DNA of 64,000 bases from Epithemia pelagica. Its lineage: Eukaryota > Protista > Bacillariophyta. Shown piece after piece: positions 14,055 through 37,402 of this stretch (position 1 is its first letter; the number at the start of each line of letters is the position of its first letter). The notes beneath the pieces are model-generated. The model had not been told where the DNA came from. It searched no databases and was given only the letters and a program-made list of their open reading frames with translations. The stretch covers positions 2,728,001 to 2,792,000 of the forward strand of contig OX337229.1 in assembly GCA_946965045.2 (NCBI GenBank). Reading direction: 5' to 3'. Both the position numbers and the translations under genes were made by a program.

Positions 14055-14069
14055 GGTTCTGAGCCCAAG
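14055..14069 (+). promoter_or_regulatory. Putative primer-binding site GGTTCTGAGCCCAAG (half-tRNA iMet type)
   Basis: Immediately follows the 5' LTR. Resembles the GGTTATGGGCCCAG PBS of Drosophila copia/Ty5, which pairs with the anticodon arm of a cleaved tRNAiMet. Confidence 0.6.
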
Positions 14070-14454
14070 ATAGTGCCTAGCCAAGCCGACGCAACTCTGC
14101 ATCCTCGAGTGAAACGTTTCCACCATCGAAGACATCTCACCCACAAGCACTGGAAGCTCGTTTAGCTTTCTCGATCTGTGGGGAGAACAACAAGATCCTA
14201 CCGACCCCAACCAAGGTCCAACCGATCGTCCAGCTCCAAACCAAGGTCCGACCGACACTAGCGCTAACCAAGATCCCATCGACTCCTCCAATCCAAGTCC
14301 AACCGATCTAAACCGTCCAACCGACCGAAACCCCCGTCCAACTCGTCCAACTGTCGATACCACTCTGCCTCCAACTGGTGCTCCACCCTCTGGCTATCAA
14401 GACTTCAACCGAGACCCCACTGACCCAACTGAGCATCCAACCGAGCCTCCAACC

Positions 14455-19392: not shown

Positions 19393-21394
19393 GGGAGCTC
19401 CGCCATCCCAGCCCTCTCCTCCGTTGGTTGTTGCTTCTGATGTTGAGCCTTCTGTCGTGGTTCCTTCTTCTCCTCCTCCCACCACTCCATCCCCTCAACA
19501 GAGGGAGAATCCACCACCACAACAACCACAATCGCCCCCTACTCCCTCCGTTCCCAAGTCTGAACCCATCTCGGCTCCCACTACAACACCAACAACCGTC
19601 TCCACAAGCCCCGTTCGACGTTCCAACCGCAACCGACGTGCACCTACTCGTCTCATCCACGACATGGACAGTAGCAAGCAATCCTACGCCAATACTCTTG
19701 CTGCCCATGCCGATGCCCATGCCGATGAACCAACACCAACCATCGCATACTACCTCCACCATGTTCTGCTCCAACAGTCCAACCTCTTCAACCTCGAGGT
19801 TTGTAAGGCCGCGGTTTCTGATCCCGACATCTTCTCCTTTGACGACATTTTGACTCTTTCAGACTTGCCTCAGTGGAAGGCCGCCGCCCAAAAGGAGATT
19901 GGAGCACTTGAACTCAAGGGCACGTGGATTGAAGTCCCGCTTACGGACGCTACATCCAAAGTACTCCCCGGTACATGGGTGTTCAAGTACAAACGGAGTC
20001 CGACAGGTGAAATCAAGAAGCACAAGGCGCGGTATTGTGTAAGAGGCGATCTGCAAGAGGGAGAGTTCGAGACGTTTGCTCCTGTTGTCTCTTGGAGCAC
20101 CATTCGTCTTGTCCTTATCTTTGCACTCACACAGAATTGGATTCTCATTTGTGTTGACTTTTCGAACGCTTTCGTTCAAGCCACGCTAAAGGAACCTGTA
20201 TGGATCCACCTACCTCGTGGATACCGCTCGTCCAAGCCGTTCCCAACTTGTCTCAAATTGAAGAAAAGTCTCTACGGTCTGTCGGTGGCTCCCAGACTAT
20301 GGTATGAGCATCTACGAGACGCCCTTTTGGAAGACGGTTTCAAACAGAGTGATCATGACATTTGCCTATTCCTTAAAGCAAACATGATCGTGTTCCTCTA
20401 CGTTGATGACTGCGGCGTCGCTGCTCCAAAGCAAAAGGACATCGATGATTTTGTCGCTCGGTTGAACAAGAAAGGGTTTGAGCTAACCCAAGATGGTGAC
20501 TTTGCGGAGTACCTTGGTATCAAATTTGTGGTCGACAAGAAGGCAAACACCATCACCATGACACAACCCGGCTTAATCAGCAAGATTGTCCAAGCAACAC
20601 AAATGGACAACTGCAACCCAAACAAAACACCAGCCTCGACGACTGCACTCGGGTCCGATCCCACTGGCCCTCCAATGAAAGAAGCTTGGTCCTATCCTTC
20701 GGTCATTGGAATGCTCTTGTACTTGTCAACGAATACTCGGCCTGACATCGCTTTCGCCGTCAGCCAAGTTGCGCGCTTTGGATCCCAACCCAAACAATCC
20801 CATGCCTCTGCTGTGAAGATGATCGTTCGATACTTATCCGGCACCGTCAACCGTGGAACAATCTTCACACCCAACAACAACTACAAGATTGATTGTTATG
20901 TCGACGCGGACTTTGCCGGCTTGCACGGCAGAGAGGACCAAGACAACCCAACAAGTGCAAAGTCGAGGACAGGCTATATCCTCTTCTTCTGTGGTAGCCC
21001 GCTCTTGTGGAAGTCTAAACTCCAGACCGAAACGGCCCTCTCAACATTCCATGCTGAGTACGTCGCCTTGTCTGCCGCCATGCGACAATTGATAGTGGTT
21101 CAACGAGTTCTCCAGGACATGGTCGCTTGCCTTCCTTTCACCACCGACACACCCCAGATTCTTGCAGAGGTTTTCGAAGACAACAACTCGGCCTTCCTTC
21201 TCGCGAACAATCAACGCCTCACTGATCGATCCAAGTGGCTCAACTGCAAGTTACACTTCTTCTGGGAATACGTCAATGATGGTTTCGCCAAGGTTTCGAA
21301 AATCTCCACCCATGACCAACGTGCCGACTATCTCACGAAAGGTTTGGTCGCTGAAAAGTTTATCGCGAATCGGAAGCAGAACCAAGGTTGGTGA
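19388..21394 (+). CDS. Copia RT-RNaseH, in the +1 frame relative to gag-PR-IN
   Basis: KARYCVRGDLQ, VDFSNAFVQA, LYGLSVAPRLW, LYVDD, YVDADFAG, ALSTFHAEY, ADYLTK. Confidence 0.95.
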   Translation, partial: FEGAPPSQPSPPLVVASDVEPSVVVPSSPPPTTPSPQQRENPPPQQPQSPPTPSVPKSEPISAPTTTPTTVSTSPVRRSNRNRRAPTRLIHDMDSSKQSYANTLAAHADAHADEPTPTIAYYLHHVLLQQSNLFNLEVCKAAVSDPDIFSFDDILTLSDLPQWKAAAQKEIGALELKGTWIEVPLTDATSKVLPGTWVFKYKRSPTGEIKKHKARYCVRGDLQEGEFETFAPVVSWSTIRLVLIFALTQNWILICVDFSNAFVQATLKEPVWIHLPRGYRSSKPFPTCLKLKKSLYGLSVAPRLWYEHLRDALLEDGFKQSDHDICLFLKANMIVFLYVDDCGVAAPKQKDIDDFVARLNKKGFELTQDGDFAEYLGIKFVVDKKANTITMTQPGLISKIVQATQMDNCNPNKTPASTTALGSDPTGPPMKEAWSYPSVIGMLLYLSTNTRPDIAFAVSQVARFGSQPKQSHASAVKMIVRYLSGTVNRGTIFTPNNNYKIDCYVDADFAGLHGREDQDNPTSAKSRTGYILFFCGSPLLWKSKLQTETALSTFHAEYVALSAAMRQLIVVQRVLQDMVACLPFTTDTPQILAEVFEDNNSAFLLANNQRLTDRSKWLNCKLHFFWEYVNDGFAKVSKISTHDQRADYLTKGLVAEKFIANRKQNQGW

Positions 21395-22053: not shown

Positions 22054-22989
22054 TGTGTGTGCGTTCCTTACCAAAAAAGGGTTTGGTATCTTTTTTCAAG
22101 TGGATTTGTTAAATGCGAGAAGTAGAAAGAGAGGGCACAGGCACAACGATACTTTCTCGCGCAAGAACATGATCTTGGGAAAAGATACACAAGATACCGA
22201 CTGACAATCGACTGTCCAGGATCCAGGATCTGTTACAACAGATCCAGGATGTCGATTTTGTCCATGGGCATCTGCCTTTGGCCTGTGTTCTGGTCTCTGC
22301 TTCAACATTCAACAATCCTGAGTGGAAAGGCTAAACGTCGAGGCCATCACCCCCATGGCAATAACTTCCTGGATAATTGGGCTTGACTGAATCACTTCTA
22401 GAATAAGACTCTTTACTACTAGATCAACTATGCTTTCAATTTGATTCAGGCACCCTTGAAAAATGAATGAGTTAGGAAGGTCGTTGGACTACAGCACCAC
22501 AGAAAAATGAGCATACCTTTTGATCCAACGGGACAAATCTTCTGTAACTGCAGAACACAGTAATATGAACACACTCAAACAACCTACCATGGTCAGATGT
22601 TTATGCGATGCATGGGTGAATGCATGCGGCATCACCGGATCTCGCCTTCATCGTGGAGTGTTTTTGCATTTTTTTTGGACTTCCGACCATTTCTGGGGTG
22701 ACGTGTACTATGGGATTTTATGTACTCTACGTAGCTTTTGTACTGAGCCTACTTAGATGTACATGGATCGGTATCCCCAATCCCCAGCCAAGGACTTACA
22801 ACTAAGACCTCATCAATGACAAATGCCTAATGCCCTACCAGTAAGCACAAAACAAGTCTTCAACGCTCACAAATTCACAAAGCTGGAGATCGGTACGAGT
22901 AACCTTACTCGTATTCATACGCACATTATTACGAGTATTTGTTTGGTGGTGGTAAAATGATAACGTGTCTGTTCAAGAAAGTGCCATCA

Positions 22990-24125: not shown

Positions 24126-25301
24126 TTATTCCAGAGCTCCCTGTTCCAACACGTTGATCATGGAGTACACGCGCGGTGCCAAATCTTGCTGTCGTAATTG
24201 AGTGGCCAAGAATTGGACAGCATCAGCGGTTCCTTCGGCATAAATGGTCCGTCCGGCCACATTATGTTGCAATTGAAATTGCACCGAACCATCGGACGAC
24301 GTCAAGGTATAGGTATGAAACGCATGACCCAATATGGCGTCTTCGGGAACACCAAAGGCCATGGCTTGTTCTTCGTCACGAATCATGTCAATGTCGTCAT
24401 TGGTAAAGGTGGAGGAGGGACCCAATAAAGTTTGAAGGGATTGAATGACCGCCTTGGCCGTCCCCGACGTGTCGGCCTTGGTTTTTTGATGCGATTCGGT
24501 AACCGATAAGGTATATCCCGCAAATGAGGCGGGATATTTGTTGGCTAAGTCTTCCAATGCCGCTTGCATGGCAACAATTTGTTTGCCCATATTGGGTGCA
24601 ATCACACAAGAAATGGCAGCTGGTTCTTCCGAATTCCCTTGAACAGTGTCCATCAAGGCTGCACGATCCCCACCGGTCGTTCCCATGACAAAAGGAATTT
24701 GATGTTTCACATAAAATTCGGCATTGCCATTGACGGCCGAAGGATGGGTGTAATCAATGGCCACCAAAATACCATTGTCTCCCACTAGCGCTTGTCGCAA
24801 CCCCGTCAATTGCGCGACAATTTCGTCCGTTTGGGTCGAAGGTATCAAAAAGACATTGGAAGAGGAACCTGTTGTGGGATCCACTACAGTAATGGTCGAT
24901 GGTTCCAATTCTGGACCTGTCATGGCAAAGGGTGTCAATTTCAAGCCTTTGCGTAAACACGCTTCGGCGGCGGCCGTTGCCATGGGACCCGGCATGCCAT
25001 TTACCATGACATGAACATCACTCGTACTGGAAGGTTTTGTCGATTCGTCATCTGTTGAACTCATGCGACGTGGCAAAACGGAAAATGGTTGTTTTTTCCA
25101 TGGCCTGTGACCACCACTCTGTCTCGTTGTCGTCTTTTCGGTGTTGGACACAACAAATGCCATGCTGGGAGATTGTTCTTGCAAAGATTTGTGGTGGAAA
25201 TGTTGAAAGGCCATACCTTGCGAGCACAAAAGCAACAGCCACAAGAGACGCAAGGTACTCGAGGAAAAGAACGACTGTGTACTACGACTGGCCATGCTCA
25301 T
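24126..25301 (-). CDS. dapB: 4-hydroxy-tetrahydrodipicolinate reductase (plant-type DapB), plastid-targeted
   Basis: VMVNGMPGPMA, IDYTHPSAV, PFVMGTTGG, APNMGKQIVA, ESHQKTKADTSGTAK, HNVAGRTIYAEG. Signal peptide ending GMA-F. Confidence 0.9.
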   Translation of the reverse strand: MSMASRSTQSFFSSSTLRLLWLLLLCSQGMAFQHFHHKSLQEQSPSMAFVVSNTEKTTTRQSGGHRPWKKQPFSVLPRRMSSTDDESTKPSSTSDVHVMVNGMPGPMATAAAEACLRKGLKLTPFAMTGPELEPSTITVVDPTTGSSSNVFLIPSTQTDEIVAQLTGLRQALVGDNGILVAIDYTHPSAVNGNAEFYVKHQIPFVMGTTGGDRAALMDTVQGNSEEPAAISCVIAPNMGKQIVAMQAALEDLANKYPASFAGYTLSVTESHQKTKADTSGTAKAVIQSLQTLLGPSSTFTNDDIDMIRDEEQAMAFGVPEDAILGHAFHTYTLTSSDGSVQFQLQHNVAGRTIYAEGTADAVQFLATQLRQQDLAPRVYSMINVLEQGALE

Positions 25302-26219
25302 GGTCCTTGGAGTTGGGATGATTTCAGGGAATCTTTTTTTTGGTTGGAAAAATGTGAGGCCCTCGCTCAGTCGATCGCTGGGACTCCTCAGAGATCCATC
25401 AACCATAATGCGGATTGAAAAGGGAACGATTCAAGAGGTGTATATTTTCTGTCCTTCGTGCGTTGCCCAACTTTGGCCTCTTGTTTTTTTCCAAAGCGCC
25501 TGCCATGTCAAATCGTCAGCCTGCCTTCGATCGTTGAAATCTGAACGCCGGCCTCGCCTTGTATTTTTTGCCATGAATCGTCTCACTTCTCACTTTTTGA
25601 CAAACCACAAGAAATGACAATGGGGCTGCAACAAAATCAAACAATCCAGCAAAATGAATGACCATAGCATGAATACTACTGTCAAGATCTACCCCCTGGA
25701 TCATCAGCAAACGCGGCAATCAACCGAATGAGAAGAAGGATGAAAAATGACAAGATGACAATCAACCAGTGTGTGGACGACATCAGAGTCTAAGGAAGGA
25801 CACAATACAATGGATAGGGCCAGGAAGCCTAAACAAAAAGGAGGAGTACCTAGATACATATAGAGTTGACTATGCTTGTATTTTAGTTGCAGTCAATGTA
25901 CTAAGAGCTTTCCTTGTTGTGGGCCATTGCCACTTGTCTTTTGTTTGTGCATGTTTTTTTCTGTTTCACGTGTGTGTTCACTGTTCATCCTTGTGTGGGA
26001 TTTCTTCGCGTCGTGCTCCGTATCAAGCCAAAGCCAGGGCGAAGCGCGCGAAGCCAGTTATGACAGTTGCTATGGACGTTATAATTACTGCTTTTAGAGA
26101 AAAAACTGAGTTATAATTTCAAGTAAAAACTAAAATGAAAAAAGAAAAATGTCGGATGGATGACAGAAGTTATACACCCGCCGGATCGGACAGATTCATG
26201 CCGTACCTACCGCCTCGTA

Positions 26220-26253
26220 CAAGCTGAGTTCAGACAGAATGTTCCTGACGTAG
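26220..26253 (+). repeat. Left TIR CAAGCTGAGTTCAGACAGAATGTTCCTGACGTAG
   Basis: Inverted match to 35890-35923. Confidence 0.9.
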
Positions 26254-26847
26254 CGCTCCAGTAGGAAATCTACGTAATCCGCGCGAGCCATCCCCTTAAT
26301 ATAGCCCTTCTATTTATGCCTCTACCGTTCTACCAAAAATTGACCATGGTGAACGGTCCTTTTGACCGATCTCTTGCCAAATAGGAGACGGCTCCATGAT
26401 CCCATGCTCTGAACCTCTTCTCCATTCATGGGTTGAGCATGGAGAACGATGTCGGCGCTGCATTCGTTTTGTAGGTGTCGTTTTATCTAGTTGAAGGTGG
26501 TCGCCGCGCGATTTACTACGGCGACTCACGGCAAAACTTGGTGCAACCAATGCACCTCTATTGTAGAATCGAATGATAGAAGATAGAACAAAGACTATGA
26601 ACACTTGTAGCGTTGTTCACGTCAAAAATTGATATTCTTCTCGTTAGATATATGGAACTTAGACTAGAAGTTGCGTCGTTCACAACAAAGATTGATGTTC
26701 TTTTCTTTGTTGTGACTCACACAGCCGTACCTGAACGCAATGTATTGTACGGTAAACGTAACACAACTATAGAATTAGATCGTATTCATAGAGAATGAAG
26801 ATCCTACTCAAATGATAATCATAAAACGCTGCTACATTGTTCACTAT

Positions 26848-27420
26848 CTAGGCTTGTTGATGATTAAAGAAGAGATTTTGAAGCGGGTGCTTGAGCATCA
26901 TCGCACCAAGCGAAATGTTGAAGCGATCCATATCCTTGCTGCCCATGTAGATTGTAACGACCTGGGGTTCCATGCAGGCTTTAGGGTTGATGGAGCAGCG
27001 TGTGTAGAGGCGGATGCGTCCCATGGGAGGTCCGTTCTTGCTCGTCTTTCCAGAGACCTGGTCCAGGTGCGACAGAGCAATGAACCCAACTGGAACAACC
27101 AACGCTGGTTCCTCATGCTCGCTTGTTGCATCCCGGTCAAAGACTGCAATCCGTAGGTAGTCGGTCGCAAGCTCCCGCTGCACAAGCAGATGGCCACGGT
27201 CGACGATGTTGTGGCCAGTGTCCTTGTTTCTCGACATGGGCCCGATGAGCGCGCAAACATCGCTGGCATAAAAGCACGACTTGAACGGGAGACCAGCACC
27301 ACCCTCACGGCCATCCTCTTCGTTGAACTCGAACTTCGTCCTCATGTTGGTCATCTTGTTTCTTCTTCCTTGCCTCTTCCTGTCGTCTCTGTTTGATTGT
27401 TCCATTGCACGGCGGGTCAT
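26848..27420 (-). CDS. Hypothetical cargo protein (190 aa; may have a further 3' exon near 26314-26560)
   Basis: ATG-started ORF with a basic N-terminus and a globular-looking core (FKSCFYASDVCALIG…LRIAVFDRD…VVPVGFIALSH). No family recognised. Confidence 0.5.
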   Translation of the reverse strand: MTRRAMEQSNRDDRKRQGRRNKMTNMRTKFEFNEEDGREGGAGLPFKSCFYASDVCALIGPMSRNKDTGHNIVDRGHLLVQRELATDYLRIAVFDRDATSEHEEPALVVPVGFIALSHLDQVSGKTSKNGPPMGRIRLYTRCSINPKACMEPQVVTIYMGSKDMDRFNISLGAMMLKHPLQNLFFNHQQA

Positions 27421-27591
27421 TCGGAAGTTGCTTCATGCTGCAAGTTGATTTTGTGGCGCGCGCCGATATTGTTCACGAATGAGCGCGGGGGGATTCCCTA
27501 GATGACACAAGAACGGAGAGCGGGCAACAATCAAACAAACAAACACAACAATCAAACGAACGAATCCCTATTGTGTTCTCACTTTCCAACG

Positions 27592-28487
27592 ATGCGCCAG
27601 ACGCGTAGTGCTACCAAACGAGCTGAGTCTGCGAAGAAGGAGCAGGAGGACTCCGCCGCAGCTCCCTCCACAACCGCATTTCCCTCCGACAAGGGAAACA
27701 AGGGAAACAAGGCAAACAAGAAAATGAAGACAAAGACGGCCGTGGACAACAAAACGTCGAAGAAGAAGAAGACGACGACGACGAAGTCTCCCGCTTCGAC
27801 AAAGAAGCATGTGACCTTCAACCTTGAGGGTCCTTCGTCGTGGCAGGAGCGGGCAACTCACCATTGGGGATGAAGATGGTATCCCAGTGTTCTTCGTCAG
27901 CAACAAGGACGTCGAATGCGCTAACCTGTCGGATATCGCGGCAGAGCTCCTTGCGATCGAGGCTGTCGGCAAAGAAGGTAAGTTTGATTGTTCATTGTTG
28001 GTTTTGAGTCTCCCTTTCTCACGACGCGCCCTCTGCTGCCACAGACACCAACCCCAACAGCAAGCCCGACAACAAGCCCGACAGCAAGCCCGAGAAGGAG
28101 ATCAAGAAGGAGGACGACGTCGAGAACAAGACTCCAGAGTCTTATGTGACCCCGAAGAAAGTAACTTCTTCCCCGAAGGTGGCGTCTCGAGCTTTCGCAC
28201 TGACCCCCTCCCAGAAGCATGCTTTCCAGCGTCGGATTGCTGAGGAACAGGTGAAGGAAAGTGGAGCGACAGACCCTCGCCAGACTTTGAATGAGTCGCT
28301 GGCATTGGGAGAAAACATCCCGTCGTCTCCTCCTTTGTTCTTTAGCAATCCTTCCCGTGCATACCGGACATCCATTGATTCGTATGCCGATGATGGATTT
28401 CTCGAGACCCAAGAAGACTTCATCGGTACGCAGCAAAACGGGCTTTTTGGCCCCGATTACTTGGATCATGAGGACGAGGCGTACTAG
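27592..28487 (+). CDS. Hypothetical Lys-rich, largely disordered cargo protein; one intron (27978-28044) and an unexplained frame change near 27815-27870
   Basis: MRQTRSATKR…KKKK start. The GTAAG…CACAG intron joins …VGKE to DTNPNSKPDNKPDSKPE…DEAY* in frame. Confidence 0.55.
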
Positions 28488-29013
28488 ATATCTACTGATG
28501 GACGTTTTAGGTATCCTTAATCACTAAATATGAATCGATTTGTCATCATGGTACTTGTAGTGCTTCTACAGTCGTTCTTGTTGTGATTATTATTATTGTC
28601 GTCGTCCAAGTCCTCGTCATTGTCGTGGCTATCATTGTCGTCGTTGTATTGTAGTCGTCCTTGTTGTAGCTATCATCGCTCATCCCGTTTGTCCTCTTCA
28701 TCATCGTTATGGTCGTGATTGTCATGGTCATCATCATCGTCATCGTCGTCATCCAGCTTCCCAGTGTCGGTAGTTGGGTCCCGGTTTGCGGGCGCGTCTC
28801 GTATGGATGTACGAGGGAGTTCGTGATTGGTCCCAGACGAGCTATGATTCTTATCTCATATTTTGCGTTTTCGACACTTCATGGAAACAAACACGACAAT
28901 GTACTAAAGTATAATATGAAGGAATAAACTAATAAATCTTAATGTCATACTGCAACTCAACGTACCATGGTATTCTTTTTCAACAATAACACACTTTCAC
29001 CACGAGGAAAGAT

Positions 29014-31863
29014 CTAAGTTTGATCGGCTTCTTTGCTCGCGATCTTCTTACCAGGTTTATAATTCGCGGCCACAAGCACCTTACGAGGATTGTCACTTAG
29101 GACGCAAACACGCTTGTCCCCGACCCAAAGCTTAACCCCAACGAGCCCACTTCGGCGAACACCAGGGATGTCTTTGTCATGGAAGTAGTAGTCGGAAAGC
29201 CTGCTTTCTCCAGAAGGAAGGTTGTAGGTGTTCTTTGGCATGGGATCGTGAACGGTCCCATCTTTTCCTTGGTACACGTAGAAATGTGCACGTGGATTCC
29301 CCATCTCCCCAGTCTTAAAGCCACCAGCATGGACAGTATCTCCTCGAACGAGGAGAAACGTGCCATATGGGATATGTACCACTTTACCCAGCTCGTTCAT
29401 ATAATCCTTGTGCTTCTCACCGCGGAAACTCCACAATTCAACGGACATACCCTCCTCCGCCAGGGGCATGAAAACAATAAAAGGCATGCGTTCCCGGAGT
29501 GGCAGATCTGCATTCGCTCTCCGAGTCTTTTTGATTGGTTGCTTCCCGGAGGGCGTTTTGGGACCTTCGGACATGTTCCCTGTTACGCTCTGGAACAAGA
29601 AGTCGATGTGAGGTTCTTGAACTTTTGCCTCTGTGGTCTTCATGAACGAAAGGTGAATGTTGATTTGGTCCGCAAATGAATCATCTTTTGCGTAGTTCAT
29701 CCCATAGAGAGCTGAGGCAAGCAGCTGCTTGAAATTGGCCGTGACCTTTGCAGCATGTTCGGGGTTAACGTGGCCGAAGTACCGAATGTTGGACACCATT
29801 CCCTCATGTTCCATCATTGCCATCAACAAATTTGGTGTGTAGTCTTGAACAGATTTGAAAAATTTGCCCTTTCCTTTCTGGTCCAAGCCTGTGCTGTACC
29901 ACGCATTCTCCAACATTTCGAGGAGATCTGGCGGAGTTGTCAAAAAATATCCTCGATACATTTTGTTTTCAATATCGTACAGCCATTTGAAATACTTCGA
30001 GCGCAATTCTCTATGTAACAACTTCATTTTCTCGAAACGCTCATTCTCCTTCGCTTTCGCATCGATCGCTTCCATCTCCTCAAAAATACTATCCGTGTCA
30101 TCTTCTGCCATTACCACTGGTACGGACATTCCAGTACTAGGGCTGGGATTGGCTTGAGTGGCGGGTTGAGCTTGTGCTGCAGGTAGGACGGGACTGCTGG
30201 GAAGGAGCACGGGTTGAGCTTGTGCTGCAGGTGGGATGGGATTGCTCGGAAGGAGGTGGGGTGAGCCTTCGACCGGCTGGGTCGTGCGTTGTTGTTGCTG
30301 CTGATGATGGAGCGATGAAGGTAGAGTCCCCCCGTAACCTCCATAGTTGGGTTGATTGTAGGACGGAGGATGTCCATGGTACTGCGGCGGAGGATGACTC
30401 GTCGGAGGATGAGGATAATGCGGCGGAGGATAAGGATAATGCGGCGGAGGATGATGATTGTACTGCGGCGGAGGGTAATTGTACTGCGGCGGAGGATAAT
30501 TGTACTGCGGCGGAGGATGGTGATAATATTGCGGAGGATAATGCGGCGGCAGCTGAGGGGGCGAATTGTAGTGCTCAGAAACGTATTGCGGAGGAGGCGG
30601 AGAAGGAGGACGAGCAACAGTAGCAACTGGACGGAAAACAGTAGAAGGAGAAGTTAAGACAGGCTTCTTTGTTTTTTTCCCGTCGTCTTCATTTTCATCA
30701 CTGGGTCGACCGCGTTTCTTTCCCTCGTCTTCGTCGTCGTCACCTTTCGTCGACGGTCGGATAACCTGTTCGGAGGACGTCGGCGATTCGTCCGAAAGGT
30801 TATAAAACAAAGACAGCTCGTCGCCCTTTTCGATCGGCTTGATTGCCTTGACTAGAAGATTCGGCATGATTCTCACGTTGTAATGATCATCCGATTCATC
30901 CGGTGGATTGTCTGTACCGTACCGATGGTGTAGGTGGTCGTTGATTAAGTGCAGCCCCATGCCGAAGTGATCGTCGTTGTCTGCTTGAAGCCTTCGATTG
31001 TCACGTCCGAACTGAATCGCGTACTCGTTGGGTACAACTGTCCGAGACGTGACGTCGTTTCCCGTGTACGCACCAATCACTTCACCATCTTTGATTGTCC
31101 GAACTGCAAAAACGCCAAACCCGGCGCCTGGGAGTTTTGACTCCTTCACCTCAAACAGAAGCACTTTTCCAAGGTAGATCTTGACTACCGGATTGTTCGC
31201 AAATGTGTAACCGACATGCTTGCCGATCGGGAAGGTATGTTTTCTGTTCTCCTTGACAGGGAGACCCATTCCACTCGAAAGTGGCACAATCTTCCCCTTT
31301 GACAAGCCAGAACCGGGCTTCCGAATTGGAGCTTCATGGACCGAAAAAGTGGCCGAAATCTTCCGTGAGACATACTCTCCCATAGCACAGGCAAGTACAG
31401 CACTGTCTTTGATCTTGGAGAGCGTCTTGAGGCCTTCGGAGAAAGTCCTGATTGGATCCCGTCCAGAACGAGAAGGGAGTTTCTCCACTTCCTCGATGCC
31501 TTTCTTGTAGTCCTCTGTGCGCGTATCGATGAGGAGCTGCCGCATTTGAGTTTCCGAATACTGTTTGCTGTGGTCCTTCTCTGGATGGCCACGCCGAACA
31601 TCTGCAAGCTTTTTATCCTTCACTTCGGCAAAGTCTTGATCCGAAAGAAACCGATGGTGCTTTGTTGTTGTCGCTTCGTCTGTTGCTGCTGCTTCGGGTG
31701 CTGCGGCTGCTGCTGCTTCGGGCGCCGCTGCTGCTTTGGCTGACTGCTCTTCCGCTGCATCTATTGCAAGTATAAGAGCGTCAAGATTTCCTTTGTCACT
31801 CATGCTGTCTCGTTTTTGAGCGCCTGCTTTTGAATACTGTTTCTTAGGGCTTGGTTTCCCCAT
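29014..31863 (-). CDS. Cargo protein: SET domain + Pro/Tyr repeat linker + C-terminal 2OG-Fe(II) dioxygenase-like domain
   Basis: SET motifs: SKLPGAGFGVFA, GEVIGAYTG, LINDH, AIKPIEKGDELSLFY. Dioxygenase-like motifs: EPHIDF (HxD), VFMPL, IPYGTFLLVRGDTVHAGG (distal His), NPRAHFY (Arg). Confidence 0.8.
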   Translation of the reverse strand: MGKPSPKKQYSKAGAQKRDSMSDKGNLDALILAIDAAEEQSAKAAAAPEAAAAAAPEAAATDEATTTKHHRFLSDQDFAEVKDKKLADVRRGHPEKDHSKQYSETQMRQLLIDTRTEDYKKGIEEVEKLPSRSGRDPIRTFSEGLKTLSKIKDSAVLACAMGEYVSRKISATFSVHEAPIRKPGSGLSKGKIVPLSSGMGLPVKENRKHTFPIGKHVGYTFANNPVVKIYLGKVLLFEVKESKLPGAGFGVFAVRTIKDGEVIGAYTGNDVTSRTVVPNEYAIQFGRDNRRLQADNDDHFGMGLHLINDHLHHRYGTDNPPDESDDHYNVRIMPNLLVKAIKPIEKGDELSLFYNLSDESPTSSEQVIRPSTKGDDDEDEGKKRGRPSDENEDDGKKTKKPVLTSPSTVFRPVATVARPPSPPPPQYVSEHYNSPPQLPPHYPPQYYHHPPPQYNYPPPQYNYPPPQYNHHPPPHYPYPPPHYPHPPTSHPPPQYHGHPPSYNQPNYGGYGGTLPSSLHHQQQQQRTTQPVEGSPHLLPSNPIPPAAQAQPVLLPSSPVLPAAQAQPATQANPSPSTGMSVPVVMAEDDTDSIFEEMEAIDAKAKENERFEKMKLLHRELRSKYFKWLYDIENKMYRGYFLTTPPDLLEMLENAWYSTGLDQKGKGKFFKSVQDYTPNLLMAMMEHEGMVSNIRYFGHVNPEHAAKVTANFKQLLASALYGMNYAKDDSFADQINIHLSFMKTTEAKVQEPHIDFLFQSVTGNMSEGPKTPSGKQPIKKTRRANADLPLRERMPFIVFMPLAEEGMSVELWSFRGEKHKDYMNELGKVVHIPYGTFLLVRGDTVHAGGFKTGEMGNPRAHFYVYQGKDGTVHDPMPKNTYNLPSGESRLSDYYFHDKDIPGVRRSGLVGVKLWVGDKRVCVLSDNPRKVLVAANYKPGKKIASKEADQT
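30395..30560. repeat. Coding ~21-24-nt tandem repeats (GCGGCGGAGGAT core) encoding PPPQYNY/PPPHYPY
   Basis: Repeated GTACTGCGGCGGAGG / ATGCGGCGGAGG units are visible on the + strand. Confidence 0.85.
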
Positions 31864-32274
31864 GGTCGAAACGCAAAAACTCGAAACACGAAACACAAGA
31901 AACACGAAACGCAGCATTCTCCTCAGCCCTCAGCTCACATTCCAAAAAAAAATCTTGAGCTCACATACTAAAAAACGGTGAAGTTTTGGTATGTGGGCTG
32001 AGTTATTTAAGGATTTGCGTGCCAGTTTTGCAATGCGTGCGCGTTTTCGGAGAGGGAGGCGTGTTTCGCGCGAGGTCTGCTCCAAAAATCGTCCATTTTC
32101 TCGCTCTCTCACATTTTCGAGGTACTTACAAACTGATAATCCAACACGCAACACGAGCACGCAACACGGAAGTGATCATTGATACCAATAACTGACAAGA
32201 AATACATTCAATAAAATGGATTGCTGTTATAAATAGTTAAGTTACATGCATTTTGATGATAAATGGAGATTAGA

Positions 32275-35200
32275 TCAGGTTTCTACTGCACCAGATCCTT
32301 GCGTTTCTCTCCAGAGACGTGAGATGAAGCCATGATCTTGGTCGAAGGCGGATCGGTGACACTTGATTGCTTTTGACATCTTTTCAATTTCGGCATACGA
32401 GAGGCCCGCAGCTGCATAGTCTCTGTTGTTGGAATTTTGATCGTATAACAAGTACGCGAGCATATAGCGACGTGCCTTTGCTGACATTTTCCGCATGATT
32501 TCGGGTGTTGTTTTCTTCAGGCTCGCTGTCAAACATCGTAAAAAGGCAGCTTTGTCTTTCTTCTCATTCAGTGAGAAAGCACGAAAGACTTTTTTTGAGT
32601 AACCCCAGCCATACTCGATCCCCTCACCGGCCATTTCACAGTGATACTTGGTCGATACGAGAATCTCGATCCTGCAACGATGTCGTTCAGACAAGTCTTC
32701 CGCCAGCTTCTCCATTGCAGATTTTTCGTTCTTGAAATCGGAGCATTCGCTCATCAGATGAACCATAGAGTACTTTTTGTAGTCCGCCTGATAGGCTTCT
32801 TTCATAGTCTTCTTATCCGCTTCCAACCATGCATCTCTGGTTGTCTTGACGTACTTGATCATGTTGTTAGGGTCTATCCACCCCCGCTCCCATAACACTT
32901 GAAAGAGCCCTTTTGCAGCATTCATCCAGCCTTCCTCGATCACATCATCTTCAATCACCGTTGCAATGTTGGAGCGTTTACAAAGGTCCTGTTGTTCACC
33001 AGCATTTTTCGATTGAAATGAACGTTGCATTCCAGGTCCCATGACCCGGACAAGTTTTGCCATGAGCTCCTTCTTTGTGAGGTTGCGCTTTTTCTTTCTA
33101 CCAGTTCGGTGTGTATTCTTCGATGCGACACGCTGCGCGTCATTGAGACGATGGCCTTTTTTAGCAACTGGACCACGATCGTTCTCCTGATAGACGAGGT
33201 GTTGTACGTCACCAACTCGTAGTTTGTCGTCATGGTTGTACGGGCCAAGGCAAGCTTGATCAATAATTTGTGTGTCCCGCATGCTGGGAACAGCTCCTCC
33301 CCAGTCGTTATTCATGTTCAGAGCATTTAACCCATCGGATTGTTGTTTTCCATGACCACTGCTTTGGTCGAACAAAAAGACAAAGTCATGGGCGGGGAAC
33401 ATGACCACGAGGCAATCGACAATATCCTCCAACTGCAAGGCCATGTATTCATAATTCCAATATCCCTCTTTATCTGCTCCGTATTCAAAAAAGCGAGTGA
33501 ACGGTTGGGCATTGGTAATTGGAGTCTTGGCAGTGTGACCATTGAGGTTCACTGCAGCCTCGGTAGAGACGTATTTGTTGTGTGTCGCATGTAGACGGAG
33601 TTCATTAATCCGAAATAGACTCGCAGCAAGCAACGGGTTTCCGTTCATAAGGAAGCCCCATGATCGGCTTACAAAAGCGCTGATCATCATCCCATGTCCA
33701 TCATCCTTTGGCAGCATTTTAGTTGCGCCATCTTTAGTGTACCATGCCTTAGACGAGAAGGAAAACTGCTTGTAGATCGATTCGTCCTGGCCGATGAGGA
33801 TGACAGGTTTGCGGTCGGAGGGAAACCTGTGTGACAAGTTTCCATTGTGAATTGTGTTTTCTGGTTTGATGTACCGTTCAAATTCGCTTGGGAAGGCATC
33901 AACATGGTACTCCCGCATCTGCTTGCCTGTTGTTACATCAGTGTACTCAAATACAAAGCTGTTTGGCAAGAGCTTCTCCTTGCCCGCATTCCCTTCGTTT
34001 TCAAGTTTGATTGCATCCTCGGTAGGGAGCTGCACCCACCGATACGACAGCTCTTCCCACTTAAAGTACTTCTTGACAAAAGCAGCTCTGTGGGCAACAT
34101 TCTCAGCATTTTCGTGTCGATCAGTGAAGTATGTTTTCGTGTGTTCCTTGAACACGAACCCTGCAGCAGCAATACATCGCCACGCTGTGCTTTGCGAAAT
34201 GGTGGAAAGCTTCATCGATGCCAAGAAGGCCTCGTACGATACTGGCGTTGCATTCGTATCCATGCACTCTTGTACAATCATGGCATGCATATCCGGAAGC
34301 AATGTTGTCCTCAGGTACATTAGAGCAGACTCTGTTGTAAGAGTGCTCAGGTTTTCCTTTGCCCAGCATTCAAACTTTACCTTTGCTTCAGGTATGTGAA
34401 CGAATAAGACGGGCGATGGCTCTTTCCCAATATGAACGTGGTAGTTGGGATGAGGGAAACTGTCGTCTTCCCGAAAGTACCTGTGAAAACGAGCAATGGT
34501 CTTGGGATGTTTTTTTACTTTTTCACCATAAATCTGTTCCATTTTGCTAATGGCTTCGCTTATGCAGTTCAGCCATGTACGACCGTGTGGCATATCAAGC
34601 AACGCTATCTTATAAGAAAGTTGTAAATACGTTGCCTTGAGCAGTACCCTCTGTTGCTGTTCCTGGTTGAGGGGAAAGATGTCTCCCTTGTTAACCACAT
34701 TCGGAAGTGCCTCCACGTTGGAAATGGCCCTTTTAAGGGTTTCTATCCATCGCTCAAGATTTTGTTTTGACGATCCTGGAGAATTGCATTTGCCGGCAAA
34801 GAGCCTACGGTTCCTTGGCTCATCAAAAAAGGCGCTTTCCATTTGTTGCGATAGACCTTGGATCATCTCACTCTCGAAAACTGAAAAACCAATCGGCAAA
34901 CTCTGTGGATGGTCATGGTCGATTTCGTCTGTGGCCAATTCAGGATGTTGGATTGCTCCAACAAGCACCTGATTTGTGTTGTCGTGAGGTGGTGACGTTT
35001 GCATTTCGGTAGGGCTGTCTCCAATTTGTGGCGGTTGACCATGTTGCTGCGTTGCAGTGCTCTTGATTGCTGGTGGAGTTGAAGTGTTTCTTGCTTGCTT
35101 GGATGTATTTAGCGTGCCTTCACGCAACCCTGGTGACTCTTCGTTCCTTCGCTTCGTTGGCTTCGCTCGTCCCGACCGCCGAATCACATTCTCGGCTGCA

Positions 35201-35616
35201 GCCTCCAGCCATTCTTGATGATCGTCCAACATCACTGGCAGGGTTGTTGTGTCTTTAGAGATGTAATAGAATGTGAAGCGTTCCCTTTTGATCGTATCTC
35301 TGTAGCGGTAGAAGCCATACTTGTTTGGCTTTTCAACATCATCGAAACACATCGCAATGCTTTTTTCTCTTCGGAAAGCACGGTTCATTTCCAGCACAGA
35401 CAATCCTGGCAACCAAGTGTTCATATATCCTACAAGCTCGACATCTCGGAACCACTTGTTGCAGAATCCAAACACGGTGGGTGAGCACTGCTTCCGAAAC
35501 AGTTCAACAATCTCGTTCCCAGAAAAACTTCGTTCCATCCGAGACTGTGCTGCGTGAGGTGAGTCCGATGATCGTGTCATTGTGGATGATGTCGATGCGT
35601 TGAACTGTTGCCCCAT
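32275..35616 (-). CDS. Transposase, IS630/Tc1/mariner-like DDE with a long insertion between the second D and the E (1113 aa)
   Basis: LIGQDESIY (D1, 33786), FLFDQSSGH (D2, 33369), STKYHCEMAGEGIEYGWG (E, 32616; cf. SPDLNPIE). HTH-like ISQSTAWRCIAAAGF. Confidence 0.85.
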   Translation of the reverse strand: MGQQFNASTSSTMTRSSDSPHAAQSRMERSFSGNEIVELFRKQCSPTVFGFCNKWFRDVELVGYMNTWLPGLSVLEMNRAFRREKSIAMCFDDVEKPNKYGFYRYRDTIKRERFTFYYISKDTTTLPVMLDDHQEWLEAAAENVIRRSGRAKPTKRRNEESPGLREGTLNTSKQARNTSTPPAIKSTATQQHGQPPQIGDSPTEMQTSPPHDNTNQVLVGAIQHPELATDEIDHDHPQSLPIGFSVFESEMIQGLSQQMESAFFDEPRNRRLFAGKCNSPGSSKQNLERWIETLKRAISNVEALPNVVNKGDIFPLNQEQQQRVLLKATYLQLSYKIALLDMPHGRTWLNCISEAISKMEQIYGEKVKKHPKTIARFHRYFREDDSFPHPNYHVHIGKEPSPVLFVHIPEAKVKFECWAKENLSTLTTESALMYLRTTLLPDMHAMIVQECMDTNATPVSYEAFLASMKLSTISQSTAWRCIAAAGFVFKEHTKTYFTDRHENAENVAHRAAFVKKYFKWEELSYRWVQLPTEDAIKLENEGNAGKEKLLPNSFVFEYTDVTTGKQMREYHVDAFPSEFERYIKPENTIHNGNLSHRFPSDRKPVILIGQDESIYKQFSFSSKAWYTKDGATKMLPKDDGHGMMISAFVSRSWGFLMNGNPLLAASLFRINELRLHATHNKYVSTEAAVNLNGHTAKTPITNAQPFTRFFEYGADKEGYWNYEYMALQLEDIVDCLVVMFPAHDFVFLFDQSSGHGKQQSDGLNALNMNNDWGGAVPSMRDTQIIDQACLGPYNHDDKLRVGDVQHLVYQENDRGPVAKKGHRLNDAQRVASKNTHRTGRKKKRNLTKKELMAKLVRVMGPGMQRSFQSKNAGEQQDLCKRSNIATVIEDDVIEEGWMNAAKGLFQVLWERGWIDPNNMIKYVKTTRDAWLEADKKTMKEAYQADYKKYSMVHLMSECSDFKNEKSAMEKLAEDLSERHRCRIEILVSTKYHCEMAGEGIEYGWGYSKKVFRAFSLNEKKDKAAFLRCLTASLKKTTPEIMRKMSAKARRYMLAYLLYDQNSNNRDYAAAGLSYAEIEKMSKAIKCHRSAFDQDHGFISRLWRETQGSGAVET

Positions 35617-35889
35617 TGGGGGTGGTTCAAGTAAACCCTAAAGCATCCGGATGCAGCTCGGCAACAGTTCAACGGGTCTGGGAGGCCCTCCACCATGGTC
35701 GTTAGACAACAACCGTTTTTTCATCATTTTGGACGGAATTCCAGCGTTCGGAAGCTGTCACGCAACACACTAAAACACATAAAAATATTTCCTAAGACTC
35801 TGGGAAGTCGCGAGTCGGACACTTTCATTCACTAGTAAGGCCGAACGCTATTAAGGATTATACTCTATGGTACTAAATCTACGAGGGGT

Positions 35890-35923
35890 CTACGTCAGGA
35901 ACATACTCCCTGAACTCAGCTTG
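35890..35923 (-). repeat. Right TIR
   Basis: Reverse complement CAAGCTGAGTTCAGGGAGTATGTTCCTGACGTAG. Confidence 0.9.
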
Positions 35924-36070
35924 TAGTGTTCGTCCCAACCCCCAATCTGCAACCTTCACCCCCCGATTAGTGGCCCCCAAGTTTTGGTTTGAGGTTATCG
36001 GTTATCGGTCGTTTCTCCCCCAAATCTAACAATTCAGAGAGATGCTGCCAAACACCAGAACAAAACCGGA

Positions 36071-37402
36071 ATGATCCAGGATGAAGAAGCAAAGAATAAT
36101 TCTTTCCAAATGACTCCTCTGGAAGTGGAGGAAGAAGAGGTCGGAGGAGACGTTGAATCAGCTACTCGACGAAGCAGCAAAAACCAGAACAGAGCAGAAC
36201 CTGGCAACCATCGGCACGAGCCTGTTGTTTCTCCCATCGCAACGGTAGCCCGTTATATCCTTCTGACTCTTGCTGCGGTGATTCTGACAGTCTCATGTGC
36301 GGATACAAGAATCCATGTACGCTCTAGTAGCTACAGGCTCACTCCAGAAGCCTCTGTCGAGATCGCTTTAGTGTATGGAATGGTTATGATGACCTTTTTT
36401 GTTGTCTTCAGGAGCGACCCAGGATTCATCACGATTGATATGATGCAAGAATTCAATGATGGAGCTGAAATTGATGGACGCAAAATAGAAGGTGGTGATG
36501 CCGAAAGGTGTGACCAAAACATCACACACGACACTTCCACGGGAGTTCCTCGACTTCGCCTCAAACGTCAATCATTTGACAGATCGTCTGAGGACGATAC
36601 TGTGGACCAAGAGGACGATTCTAACAGTGAGTTAGATCCATTGACATCACCAGAGTCGCACGCAAGTGTATCGGAAGCGTCAGAAAATGAAGGTTTATGT
36701 GATATTCAACAGAATGGCATGGTGCGGACACGTCGCCCGTTTTGTGACAAATGTGGCTTTGCACCTCCATTACGAAGTCACCATTGCAAAGTTTGCGATA
36801 AGCATGTGGCTATGTTTGATCACCACTGCCATTTTATCGGAACATGCATCGGTGAACGAAATCATTGCCGATTTTGGTGGTTTCTAACCGCGCAGTCGGT
36901 TGGTTTCTGGTACCTGATGCACACGATTGGATCCAGTCCATATGGCTTTGTGAACCTTTTCTTCACAGGGGCTCACCATGACAACAACCTACAGTCAAAT
37001 GACGAAAGCCACGATATTCTGATCAAAGCTCTCTTCGTAGTGTCGGCAAAGCTTTTTGTTTATCCCCTTGCTTGGATGAGTTGGTTCATGTGGTGTGTAC
37101 ACACGTTTTTGGCTAGCACGAATTCAACGACATTTGAATGGAGCAAGGGAGCTCAGCACTTGGAGTACTTGAAAGGAAGTCGCATGAGTGATCTGCCGTA
37201 CAGTTTCCGCAGCATGGATCAGAACTTGGTCTACTTTTGCTGCCAGCGTGATTCCTTTTGTGACGACACATTGTGTGGTCCGTCCTTGCACAGGAAAACT
37301 GGTTGGAAGCCGGCGGTTTGGAGACCACCGGGCAAGGTGGTACGCGATTCGGAGGACTGGTGGGAGCACCCCTGGCAAAACAAATACTGGAGCTGCTGTT
37401 GA
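36071..37402 (+). CDS. DHHC palmitoyltransferase
   Basis: FCDKCGFAPPLRSHHCKVCDKHVAMFDHHCHFIGTCIGERNH, SDPG, TTFE and transmembrane segments. Confidence 0.95.
   Translation: MIQDEEAKNNSFQMTPLEVEEEEVGGDVESATRRSSKNQNRAEPGNHRHEPVVSPIATVARYILLTLAAVILTVSCADTRIHVRSSSYRLTPEASVEIALVYGMVMMTFFVVFRSDPGFITIDMMQEFNDGAEIDGRKIEGGDAERCDQNITHDTSTGVPRLRLKRQSFDRSSEDDTVDQEDDSNSELDPLTSPESHASVSEASENEGLCDIQQNGMVRTRRPFCDKCGFAPPLRSHHCKVCDKHVAMFDHHCHFIGTCIGERNHCRFWWFLTAQSVGFWYLMHTIGSSPYGFVNLFFTGAHHDNNLQSNDESHDILIKALFVVSAKLFVYPLAWMSWFMWCVHTFLASTNSTTFEWSKGAQHLEYLKGSRMSDLPYSFRSMDQNLVYFCCQRDSFCDDTLCGPSLHRKTGWKPAVWRPPGKVVRDSEDWWEHPWQNKYWSCC

Follow-up and report, generated by a model that had tools for sequence, protein, structure and literature searches.

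Transposons of the IS630/Tc1/mariner (ITm) group normally carry a transposase as their only gene, with 34–41 residues between the second aspartate and the last acidic residue of its catalytic core (DD34-41D/E), and Tc1/mariner ends typically start with 5'-CAG. In anthropoid primates, a host gene has captured the Hsmar1 transposase as an exon, giving the domesticated fusion protein SETMAR (Metnase). Transposons of other superfamilies that carry SET and Fe(II)/2-oxoglutarate (2OG) oxygenase genes have already been described (PMC12730594; bioRxiv 10.1101/2025.02.11.637652), and SET or 2OG accessory genes are known from Harbinger, MuDR, Plavaka and Helitron elements. Phytophthora HarbingerS and MuDR families encode a SET histone methyltransferase (cited in PMC12730594), whereas fungal KDZ, Plavaka and other DNA transposons encode TET/JBP dioxygenases (PMC12730594). 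Red-algal Plavaka (EnSpm/CACTA) and Mutator elements carry accessory genes, PAG1-3, whose proposed role is to modify the element's own chromatin or DNA (bioRxiv 10.1101/2025.02.11.637652). We found no report in the literature of SET or 2OG accessory genes in Tc1-like elements or in diatoms; a Tc1-like diatom transposon with such cargo is therefore new for its superfamily and host rather than in kind.

We analyzed a window of 64,000 nucleotides from contig OX337229.1 of the diatom Epithemia pelagica. Positions 26218-35925 of this window (9,708 bp) are one copy of a recently active, autonomous-looking family of cut-and-paste DNA transposons that inserts at, and duplicates, the dinucleotide TA. 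The copy lies in a spacer of about 170 bp between divergent DapB and DHHC genes. It is delimited by a TA at 26218..26219 and another at 35924..35925 (neither assigned a strand), and directly inside these lie terminal inverted repeats (TIRs) at 26220..26264 (plus strand; 34-nt core at 26220-26253, with imperfect pairing up to 26264) and 35879..35923 (minus strand; core at 35890-35923). A sequence-only reading of this DNA had proposed 34-bp TIRs agreeing at 31 of 34 positions with TA on both sides, which proved correct: the core pairs at 31/34 positions, the arms that include the TA (26218-26264 and 35879-35925) match at 83% over 47 nt, and the window contains two occurrences of the 34-nt pattern where chance predicts 0.00. 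The left TIR does not vary among copies, the three positions at which left and right TIRs differ are the same in every copy, and the right TIR marks the exact start of homology with another copy (L001). Across the wider transposase group, the TIRs start with TA|CAGCTG or CAAGCTG, these termini are conserved in subfamilies and in metagenome relatives, and TA also stands at both ends of the 3.4–3.8-kb metagenome relatives.

The same assembly holds eight full-length copies including that in the window (9,708-9,728 bp), all with the same TIRs, the same gene set and TA at both ends (8/8) in unrelated flanks. The sequence-only reading had named further copies and an empty site as checks, and both were found. 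The seven copies elsewhere in the assembly are 9.72 kb each, five copies are 99.96–99.99% identical across their whole length, and the transposase cluster at ≥90% identity comprises 43 protein variants in this assembly. Where the window and locus L005 hold TA-element-TA, the allelic contigs L010 and L011 read ...ccgcttcgTAgtgttcg... and ...ggctcTAgcttt..., respectively, with a single TA between the same flanks; this makes the TA a genuine target-site duplication and shows that insertions are polymorphic. The window copy is present on one haplotype (or strain) only. Diverged subfamilies carry related cargo. In element L012, the transposase is 61% identical to that of the window, the SET domain 84%, the oxygenase 71% and a small protein, ORF4, 66%; in the 6.98-kb element L013, the corresponding values are 38–41% for the transposase, 29–33% for SET and 41–43% for ORF4, a 248-aa antisense ORF is present and the oxygenase was not found. 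The cargo thus exists in multiple copies and accompanies the element, even where subfamilies have transposases only 38–61% identical, rather than consisting of single-copy host genes.

The gene at the right-hand end (32275..35616, minus strand) encodes 1,113 amino acids and was read from sequence as a DDE transposase. Its size and place were confirmed, and residue conservation and structure bear out the DDE assignment, although Pfam finds no transposase domain in the protein. In the predicted model (pLDDT 79.8), an N-terminal folded domain (aa 30-145) is followed by a disordered stretch, a helical/HTH region and an RNase-H-like core. The putative catalytic residues are D611 (33784-33786), D750 (33367-33369) and E1001 (32614-32616), all on the minus strand; D611/E612, D750 and E994/E1001 are invariant in an alignment of 35 transposase sequences, and the motifs DE(S), D..(S)GH and P..H.E....IE..W resemble Tc1 motifs by eye. 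About 250 residues separate D750 from E1001, including an insertion of about 230 residues between D750 and the E motif, within which some group members have a SAP-like motif. Homologues number 91 protein clusters and 413 metagenome loci; the named ones belong to two diatoms, Fragilaria crotonensis and Thalassiosira exigua. Pfam sees none of these transposase domains. Elements of this group have probably been missed or wrongly annotated in diatom genomes.

The narrower label, Tc1/mariner-like, found support. TA duplication agrees with it, and so do domain matches just upstream of the core, in the layout of Tc1/IS630 proteins: HTH_33 matches 7/35 members, one of them above the Pfam cut-off (26.9 versus 25 bits), and positions 67-143 of the NCBIfam IS630 model match 5/35 (best E 3.9e-5, far under the 100-bit cut-off), the window protein itself matching neither. 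The only significant BFVD fold match is an 805-aa 'Tc1-like transposase DDE domain-containing protein' (E 2.1e-12, probability 1.00, 1,094 aligned columns). Mos1 mariner ranks first in a Foldseek search of 350,000 PDB chains, non-significantly (E 0.24). The catalytic core, in contrast, has no sequence counterpart in these collections: no match to Pfam DDE_3, Transposase_1 or DDE_1 in any of the 35 members, no PDB sequence match to Tc1/mariner proteins with the full or the core profile, and nothing from hhalign against the Tc1-like protein of locus L008. The core's link to Tc1 is therefore one predicted-structure match together with UniProt's naming of the matched protein. On the combined residue, domain and model evidence, there is good support for placing the protein among the DDE transposases of the IS630/Tc1/mariner kind, as a putative member that is very large and deeply diverged.

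Just downstream of the transposase lies the SET gene, which in the window (29014..31917, minus strand) encodes a 967-aa protein that had been described as a SET and dioxygenase-like fusion. Both halves were confirmed, the SET domain by Pfam and the dioxygenase by AlphaFold and Foldseek. The SET domain (30799-31122, minus strand; aa 266-373) matches PF00856 with E 4.5e-6 (27.5 bits versus a cut-off of 22.4), Pfam also matches L012, L013 (E 1.6e-5) and L007, and the motifs A.FG.FA, G.Y.G, MGLH..ND (with ND(H) as the NHS motif) and EL...YNL are kept across subfamilies, including L012 and L013. A Pro/Gln/Tyr-rich repeat linker connects it to the oxygenase part (~29017-30120, minus strand), which no Pfam model matches. 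In this part, H770 (29608-29610), D772 (29602-29604) and H863 (29329-29331), all on the minus strand, are invariant across 46 sequences, of which at least 90% also have R876 (29290-29292, minus strand); 240 homologues were found. The AlphaFold model of the oxygenase (pLDDT 84.4) matches 420 PDB chains at E≤1e-3 with probability 1.00, every one of the best being an Fe(II)/2OG dioxygenase, and its distal His aligns with that of FtmOx1 in a weak profile match. The 967-aa protein, a putative enzyme, joins a SET domain to an Fe(II)/2OG dioxygenase fold with an HxD...H iron triad. The nearest folds are small-molecule and PhyH-like 2OG enzymes (FtmOx1, AndA, TraH and DAO; TM-scores 0.3–0.43). JmjC, TET/JBP and AlkB proteins are absent from the top 50 structural matches, and none of the 46 oxygenase members has a JmjC or TET_JBP Pfam match. 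The predicted fold gives no pointer to a chromatin substrate. The fusion has no recognizable DNA- or histone-reading domain. A TFIIS/Med26 N-terminal domain, which is a nuclear module, is present in one of the oxygenase homologues, and stand-alone relatives of 300–460 aa occur in marine protist transcriptomes. The fusion ORF is open at 949-967 aa in 6/8 copies, has a stop in L007 and is represented by two ORFs in L012; dN/dS of 0.6–0.8 for SET and oxygenase denotes weak constraint.

The remaining cargo had been listed as two unknown ORFs, one of which stands. ORF4 (190 aa; 26848..27420, minus strand) is a conserved core accessory gene that keeps its position and strand in L012 and L013. Between the window and L012, its dN/dS (0.24) and dS (0.88) are like those of the transposase (0.27 and 0.92), and it has no match in Pfam, PDB or viral searches. 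The second, a 182-aa ORF (27921-28469, minus strand), is probably not coding, since its pN/pS exceeds 1 and a stop interrupts it in copy L007. A better-supported gene at that place is ORF3 (27502..28243), which lies on the plus strand, antisense to the other genes. In the window copy, it is frameshifted by a net 11-bp deletion near 27846-27851, whereas in the seven other copies (L002-L008) it is intact and encodes a basic protein of 250 aa. Substitutions on its strand are mostly synonymous, tblastn finds it in L012 (E 8e-29), and the antisense ORF of L013 shares its place, its orientation and the motif QW.L.GDE.G.

Across the group, five complete metagenome elements of 3.4–3.8 kb carry the transposase only, and the cargo carriers form one clade (support 96/94). 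With cargo compared outside subfamilies P0007 and P0110 and outside P0002, P0004 and P0008, the closest relatives in metagenomes, ordinary members are transposase-only and extra genes occur in one clade of this genome. Within that clade, the oxygenase is fused to or adjoins the SET gene in the window and L012 lineages. Divergence differs sharply along the element: between the window and L012, dS is only 0.12 for SET and 0.25 for the oxygenase, as against the far higher values of the transposase and ORF4. Counted from its right-hand (transposase) end, the window copy resembles L007 for the first 1.2 kb; in the linker and oxygenase it resembles L002. From these patterns, we infer that SET and oxygenase form an exchangeable module, passed among element subfamilies through recombination.

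As a whole, the observations are likely best explained by a recently active TA-inserting family with a large IS630/Tc1-like transposase, a clade of cargo carriers and the following candidate cargo roles. ORF4 would be a cofactor needed by the element, a proposal on which we are evenly divided. More tentatively, the SET-oxygenase protein might work in the nucleus, at the element or close to it, on histones or other proteins of chromatin, shifting chromatin state in the element's favor through anti-silencing or protected expression; this role is proposed only from domain types. We regard as rather unlikely in its full extent a broader picture, in which an undescribed, widespread and deep Tc1/IS630-like branch (transposases of ~1,000 aa, DD~250E) would span diatoms, other aquatic protists and a giant-virus relative, with one lineage having built a multi-gene element, convergent with the red-algal Plavaka set, in which ORF4 would co-evolve with the transposase as a cofactor and a recombining SET-2OG module would rewrite chromatin against silencing.

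The cargo invites two other readings. The extra genes could be passive passengers, host genes or fragments captured once (as in Pack-MULEs) that bring no benefit and persist only because the family is young. The weak constraint on SET and oxygenase, the stop in the fusion gene of L007 and its split form in L012, the frameshifted ORF3 of the window copy and the transposase-only state of most of the wider group would all fit. However, decay after insertion inflates dN/dS between transposon copies, most copies keep the long fusion ORF open, and the SET motifs and HxD...H triad are conserved; moreover, ORF4 is constrained as tightly as the transposase, and both SET and ORF4 hold their position and strand in subfamilies with transposases at 38–41% identity and saturated dS, which makes mere passage quite unlikely. 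Alternatively, the SET-oxygenase and the small proteins could act on non-chromatin targets, modifying the transposase or host proteins, controlling target choice or benefiting the host cell. An oxygenase fold nearest to small-molecule and PhyH-type enzymes rather than JmjC or TET, the stand-alone marine relatives and the lack of a recognizable reading domain point that way. We still consider it unlikely: the main activity of SET domains is protein-lysine (histone) methylation, a nuclear module occurs in one homologue of the oxygenase, and other transposon superfamilies have independently acquired SET and 2OG oxygenase genes (bioRxiv 10.1101/2025.02.11.637652), which suggests a common need tied to transposon chromatin.

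The identity of the element itself can be questioned in the same way. If the transposase belonged to a separate, undescribed DDE superfamily, its TA targeting would be coincidental; the missing Pfam and PDB sequence matches, the non-significant PDB fold search, and a size (~1,000–1,100 aa) and spacing far outside the DD34-41D/E range would then be expected. Against this stand the significant full-length match to a protein named a Tc1-like DDE transposase, the HTH_33 and IS630-model matches, the top rank of Mos1 entries, the TA duplication, the 5'-CAG ends and the Tc1-like motifs (seen by eye), and we judge a separate superfamily improbable. Nothing was found in favor of a chance pairing of the TIRs around ordinary host genes, and its probability is negligible, given eight copies with identical ends in unrelated flanks, two empty sites and a chance expectation of 0.00.

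Few superfamilies have so far been found with their own chromatin enzymes: Harbinger/MuDR in oomycetes, Plavaka/Mutator in red algae, KDZ in fungi and VANDAL in plants. A SET and 2OG oxygenase pair in a TA-inserting, Tc1-like diatom element would mark a recurrent, convergent solution and would add weight to the view that transposons have a general way of countering silencing by the host. The family is also tractable, being now or very recently mobile, with five copies that are 99.97% identical and hemizygous insertions beside ordinary genes. Natural variants are available for comparison, including elements with and without the oxygenase, copies with a broken SET-oxygenase or ORF3, and cargo-free relatives of ~3.5 kb.

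Compared with ITm elements, the diatom family shares TIR-bounded cut-and-paste transposition, TA duplication, and 5'-CAG TIRs, together with a putative paired-HTH-type region followed by a predicted DDE/D RNase-H-like core, and the nearest predicted folds of its transposase are Mos1 and a Tc1-like DDE protein. It differs in that this transposase is about three times larger, has ~250 rather than ~34–41 residues between its last two catalytic positions and a catalytic core missed by Pfam, and in that plain group members are 3.4–3.8 kb whereas the cargo lineage reaches 7–9.7 kb with three or four extra genes. SETMAR, too, combines SET with a mariner-type transposase within a single genetic unit, but the diatom mobile element carries a separate SET gene.

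Target duplications are 3 bp in Harbinger and 9 bp in MuDR. In the Phytophthora HarbingerS and MuDR families, as in the diatom family, a stramenopile DNA transposon with TIRs has a SET gene among its stable accessories, but their transposases are of the Harbinger and MuDR types, and an oxygenase is not reported for them. Fungal TET/JBP elements and the Arabidopsis VANDAL elements with VANC are similar in encoding proteins for which an effect on the element's epigenetic state has been proposed or shown; the fungal elements belong to other superfamilies and the diatom oxygenase is not TET/JBP-like by fold ranking, whereas VANC is not an enzyme of the SET/oxygenase kind and VANDAL is again another superfamily. 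Red-algal Plavaka and Mutator elements offer a SET protein, a putative 2OG oxygenase (best template PhyH-like) and a gene of unknown function, all kept across families, although in another transposase superfamily and host lineage. By domain make-up, the fusions among their PAGs pair SET with an N6-adenine DNA methylase and the oxygenase with a ParB-like domain that has tandem repeats nearby, whereas the diatom element fuses SET to the oxygenase and its window copy has no methylase, ParB domain or repeat array. With transposons that carry stable epigenetic accessories (HarbingerS, Plavaka-PAG, KDZ-TET and VANDAL), the diatom family has in common accessory genes that lie inside the TIRs in many copies and are kept across diverged families.

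The element at window positions 26218–35925 (9,708 bp) is bounded by inverted-repeat arms at 26218–26264 and 35879–35925 (47 nt at 83%). Each arm opens with TA and continues into a 34-nt core in which 31 of 34 positions pair. Shuffles predict 0.00 occurrences of this core pattern, and the window has exactly two, bearing out the terminal inverted repeats (TIRs) and TA ends proposed in the sequence-only reading. Inside the TIRs lie a 1113-aa open reading frame (ORF), the transposase (32275–35616, minus strand), and a 967-aa ORF encoding a fusion of SET and Fe(II)/2OG oxygenase domains (29014–31917, minus strand); the 190-aa ORF4 is at 26848–27420, also on the minus strand. No tandem-repeat array was seen outside the coding Pro-rich linker, the tRNA search detected none, and we found no domain common to the transposase, the SET-oxygenase protein, ORF4 and the antisense ORF3 described below.

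Further copies were drawn from ENA assembly ERZ21939226, where the window corresponds to ctg1317l and positions 26071–47402 are 100% identical to the matching locus. Besides the window copy, this assembly holds seven full-length copies (L002–L008) of 9,722–9,728 bp each, which have both TIRs of the window copy, the same three left/right differences included, and TA at either end within unrelated flanks. Copies L002–L006 differ pairwise by 1–4 substitutions per 9.7 kb (99.96–99.99% identity), and the transposase cluster at ≥90% identity holds 43 protein variants. For most flanking genes, another contig holds a single near-identical partner, which indicates that the assembly contains both haplotypes or two close strains. 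At two of the loci, this second contig lacks the element: the filled junction of the window (...ccgcctcg TA[element]TA gtgttcgtccc...) reads ...ccgcttcgTAgtgttcgtccc... in its allele L010, and that of L005 (...ggctc TA[element]TA gcttt...) reads ...ggctcTAgcttt... in its allele L011. Because filled and empty alleles occur at both loci, the repeated TA is a genuine target-site duplication, and these insertions are polymorphic. These results, which supply both the additional copies and the empty sites that the sequence-only reading had proposed to look for, support its structural claims: the element inserts by a TIR-bounded cut-and-paste reaction at TA with duplication, has been recently active and keeps a stable multi-gene structure. 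The window copy sits in a short spacer between the divergent genes DapB (24126–25406, minus strand) and DHHC (36071–37402, plus strand), and no additional copies or fragments were found in the remaining window or the other fetched loci.

The same spacer holds a second indel polymorphism, a stretch of ~770 bp (25425–26197) that lies 20 bp from the left end of the element and is replaced in L010 by 7 bp (ttctata); no other fetched locus contains it, and the ORF within it (25769–26116) has no Pfam match. Elsewhere in the window, ~190-bp repeats at 63325–63964 are 97–99% identical to sequences flanking copy L008 (5797–5986 and 16315–16497 of that locus) and form a dispersed or tandem repeat family with no relation to the element, and 22345–22771, ~85% identical to L008 4931–5356, is also a dispersed repeat.

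The sequence-only reading had called the 1113-aa protein a DDE transposase; the ORF is present, but neither it nor any of 35 homologues contains a Pfam transposase domain. Whether the PDB was searched by sequence with the protein itself, with the full profile or with a core-only profile, it returned nothing relevant to the transposase, and the catalytic core, again with the core-only profile included, matched no Pfam or PDB sequence. Homologues are numerous: the protein collection contains 91 clusters of them, and metagenome contigs yielded 413 confirmed loci. Fragilaria crotonensis and Thalassiosira exigua, at ~33% identity, are the only named sources. Across 35 aligned sequences, D611/E612 (GQDES), D750 (FDxSSGH) and E994/E1001 (PKYHCExAGEGIEYxWG) are invariant, with ~250 residues between the second Asp and the Glu; D611, D750 and E1001 would form the active site.

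Several lines of evidence bear on the placement of this protein. Directly upstream of the core lies a stretch with the consensus SxxTxxRWLxxLGFKYxxxKKxYYxDxHE, which Pfam HTH_33 matches in 7 of 35 members (one above the gathering score) and positions 67–143 of the NCBIfam IS630 model match in 5 of 35 (best E 3.9e-5). The AlphaFold model is confident (pLDDT 79.8), and when the whole model was compared with the PDB by Foldseek, four Mos1 mariner entries ranked first, at non-significant E values of 0.24–0.9. Among predicted viral structures (BFVD), the sole significant match was A0A3G5AK55, an 805-aa Sylvanvirus sp. protein named "Tc1-like transposase DDE domain-containing protein" (E 2.1e-12, probability 1.00, 1094 aligned columns). 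TIRs across the transposase group begin TA|CAGCTG or CAAGCTG. Taking together the HTH and IS630 sequence links, the fold match, the TA duplication and the TIR starts, we consider it likely that the transposase represents a deep IS630/Tc1/mariner-type branch whose proteins are large-bodied. The Sylvanvirus match, which rests on a predicted structure, hints that large Tc1-like transposases may occur in giant viruses too; no relatives of the transposase were found among IMG/VR viral contigs. The same genome also encodes, 1.3 kb from copy L008 (17052–18482 of that locus), a 476-aa protein with DUF7769 and several HTH matches (HTH_23, HTH_Tnp_Tc3_2) that is probably an ordinary Tc1/mariner-type transposase; hhalign found no match between it and the transposase family profile.

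The SET part of the fusion protein stood up as first read: a Pfam SET domain at aa 266–373 scores above the cut-off (E 4.5e-6), and SET motifs are retained in diverged subfamilies. For the oxygenase part (the C-terminal 368 residues), word-indexed homology searches returned the element's own relatives alone, and an exhaustive HMMER search gave a wider set of 240 homologues, mostly proteins of 300–460 aa and part of them from MMETSP transcriptomes. The residues H770, D772 and H863 do not vary in an alignment of 46 sequences, and R876 is almost invariant. The oxygenase model (pLDDT 84.4) matches 420 PDB chains at E ≤ 1e-3, and its top fold matches are all Fe(II)/2OG dioxygenases (TraH, DAO1, FtmOx1, AndA, AsqJ and T7H); in a weak profile match to FtmOx1, the distal His residues of the two proteins align. 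JmjC, TET/JBP and AlkB are absent from its top fold matches and its Pfam matches. The fusion gene carries a stop in L007. In the interrupted copy L001 (ctg1356l), the SET gene is cut after about codon 388, and foreign sequence from 14747 onward starts with TGTAGG and comprises two ORFs (636 and 501 aa) without assigned identity, then a Copia-type RVT_2 gene; no second TIR was found within 13.5 kb. L001 could be read as a variant with different cargo, a reading we rejected in favor of the simpler one, that of a copy broken by a nested retrotransposon, to judge from the sequence probably a Copia-type LTR element.

Of the two further ORFs singled out by the sequence-only reading, ORF4 is conserved (66% in the diverged subfamily L012 and 41–43% in another, L013) and has no relatives in Pfam, PDB or IMG/VR; the other, probably a 182-aa minus-strand ORF (27921–28469), we rejected as a gene because its pN/pS exceeds 1 and L007 carries a stop. 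Better supported, on conservation, as the gene between ORF4 and the fusion gene is the antisense ORF3, which encodes a 250-aa basic protein and is intact in seven copies. It has a counterpart in L013 that agrees in position, orientation, size and QW.L.GDE.G motif, and one in L012 (tblastn E 8e-29); against Pfam, it gave low-complexity noise alone. In the window copy, ORF3 is frameshifted by a net 11-bp deletion (27846–27851) just before this motif, relative to the seven other copies, and the window copy may thus be defective for ORF3.

Outside two variable modules, the window copy, L002 and L007 are 96–100% identical. The first 1.2 kb of the window copy from its right-hand, transposase end (35925–34734), a module that takes in the transposase N-terminus, is 99% L007-like and 75–96% L002-like, whereas its linker and oxygenase (30734–28879) are 100% L002-like and 80–87% L007-like. 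This combination of an L007-type right-end module with an L002-type linker and oxygenase module reveals recombination between copies. Between the window and L012, the transposase (dS 0.92, dN/dS 0.27) and ORF4 (dS 0.88, dN/dS 0.24) have diverged in step and are equally constrained, as would suit a cofactor that the element needs; ORF4 may assist transposition. For the SET (dS 0.12, dN/dS 0.78) and oxygenase (dS 0.25, dN/dS 0.72) parts, dN/dS is inflated by decay after insertion, above all in the apparently old L012 copy; this block seems to have been swapped between subfamilies long after the transposases split, and its constraint looks weak.

Cargo content varies among related elements. L012 (~9.8 kb; transposase 61% identical to that of the window) carries SET (84%) and oxygenase (71%) as two separate ORFs, and L013 (6.98 kb; transposase 38–41%; TIRs beginning TA-CAAGCTGGTTCACG) carries SET (29–33%) and lacks the oxygenase. 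Five complete metagenome elements of 3.4–3.8 kb (transposase ~32–35%) contain the transposase as their sole gene, without SET, oxygenase or ORF4. None of these three was found beside the transposase at the Fragilaria crotonensis locus or at 80 metagenome loci, most of whose contigs are too short to decide. In the transposase tree, the cargo carriers group in a single clade (96/94 support) with two other subfamilies from this genome, and the cargo-free elements fall outside it. The most parsimonious history would start from an ancestor without cargo that gained SET, ORF4 and ORF3 once; the oxygenase would have been added later (or lost in L013).

The Fragilaria locus (JAKSYS010000423.1) also contains two MITE-like elements of ~410–460 bp (9090–9550 and 20405–20815) that adjoin a transposase gene of the family and have TIRs starting TACAGCTGGTTTCAT or GCTGGTTGCAC; both probably derive from this transposon group and are non-autonomous. 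A 2.4-kb element (13355–15744), bounded by 35-nt TIRs (94%) and carrying a transposase fragment of DDE_1 (pogo) type, closely follows the large transposase gene on its downstream side.

We tentatively propose that the SET-oxygenase protein could modify chromatin proteins, histones or others, on the element or close to it and so favor its expression or mobility. The entire grounds for this step are the domain types and the parallel with other transposons, and we regard it as possible rather than probable.

SET genes are carried by Phytophthora HarbingerS and MuDR elements, and TET/JBP genes by several lineages of DNA transposons in fungi (PMC12730594). In red algae, Plavaka and Mutator elements encode PAG2 (DNA methylase and SET), PAG3 (ParB-like and 2OG oxygenase, with a PhyH-like best template) and PAG1, whose function is unassigned, and captured SET and 2OG genes are known from Helitrons (bioRxiv 10.1101/2025.02.11.637652). 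The giant KDZ, EnSpm and Sola-1 elements of brown algae have accessory genes, which are lacking from the Tc1-mariner elements of these algae, up to 4.4 kb in length (PMC12477816). The literature that we searched (Repbase and Dfam lie outside this search) describes no TA-inserting Tc1-like element with such cargo, no such cargo transposon in diatoms and no direct SET-oxygenase fusion. Cargo-bearing DNA transposons are thus already known elsewhere; what is new here is a Tc1-like group that carries such cargo, a lineage within a branch of Tc1-like transposons that escapes Pfam and is apparently undescribed.
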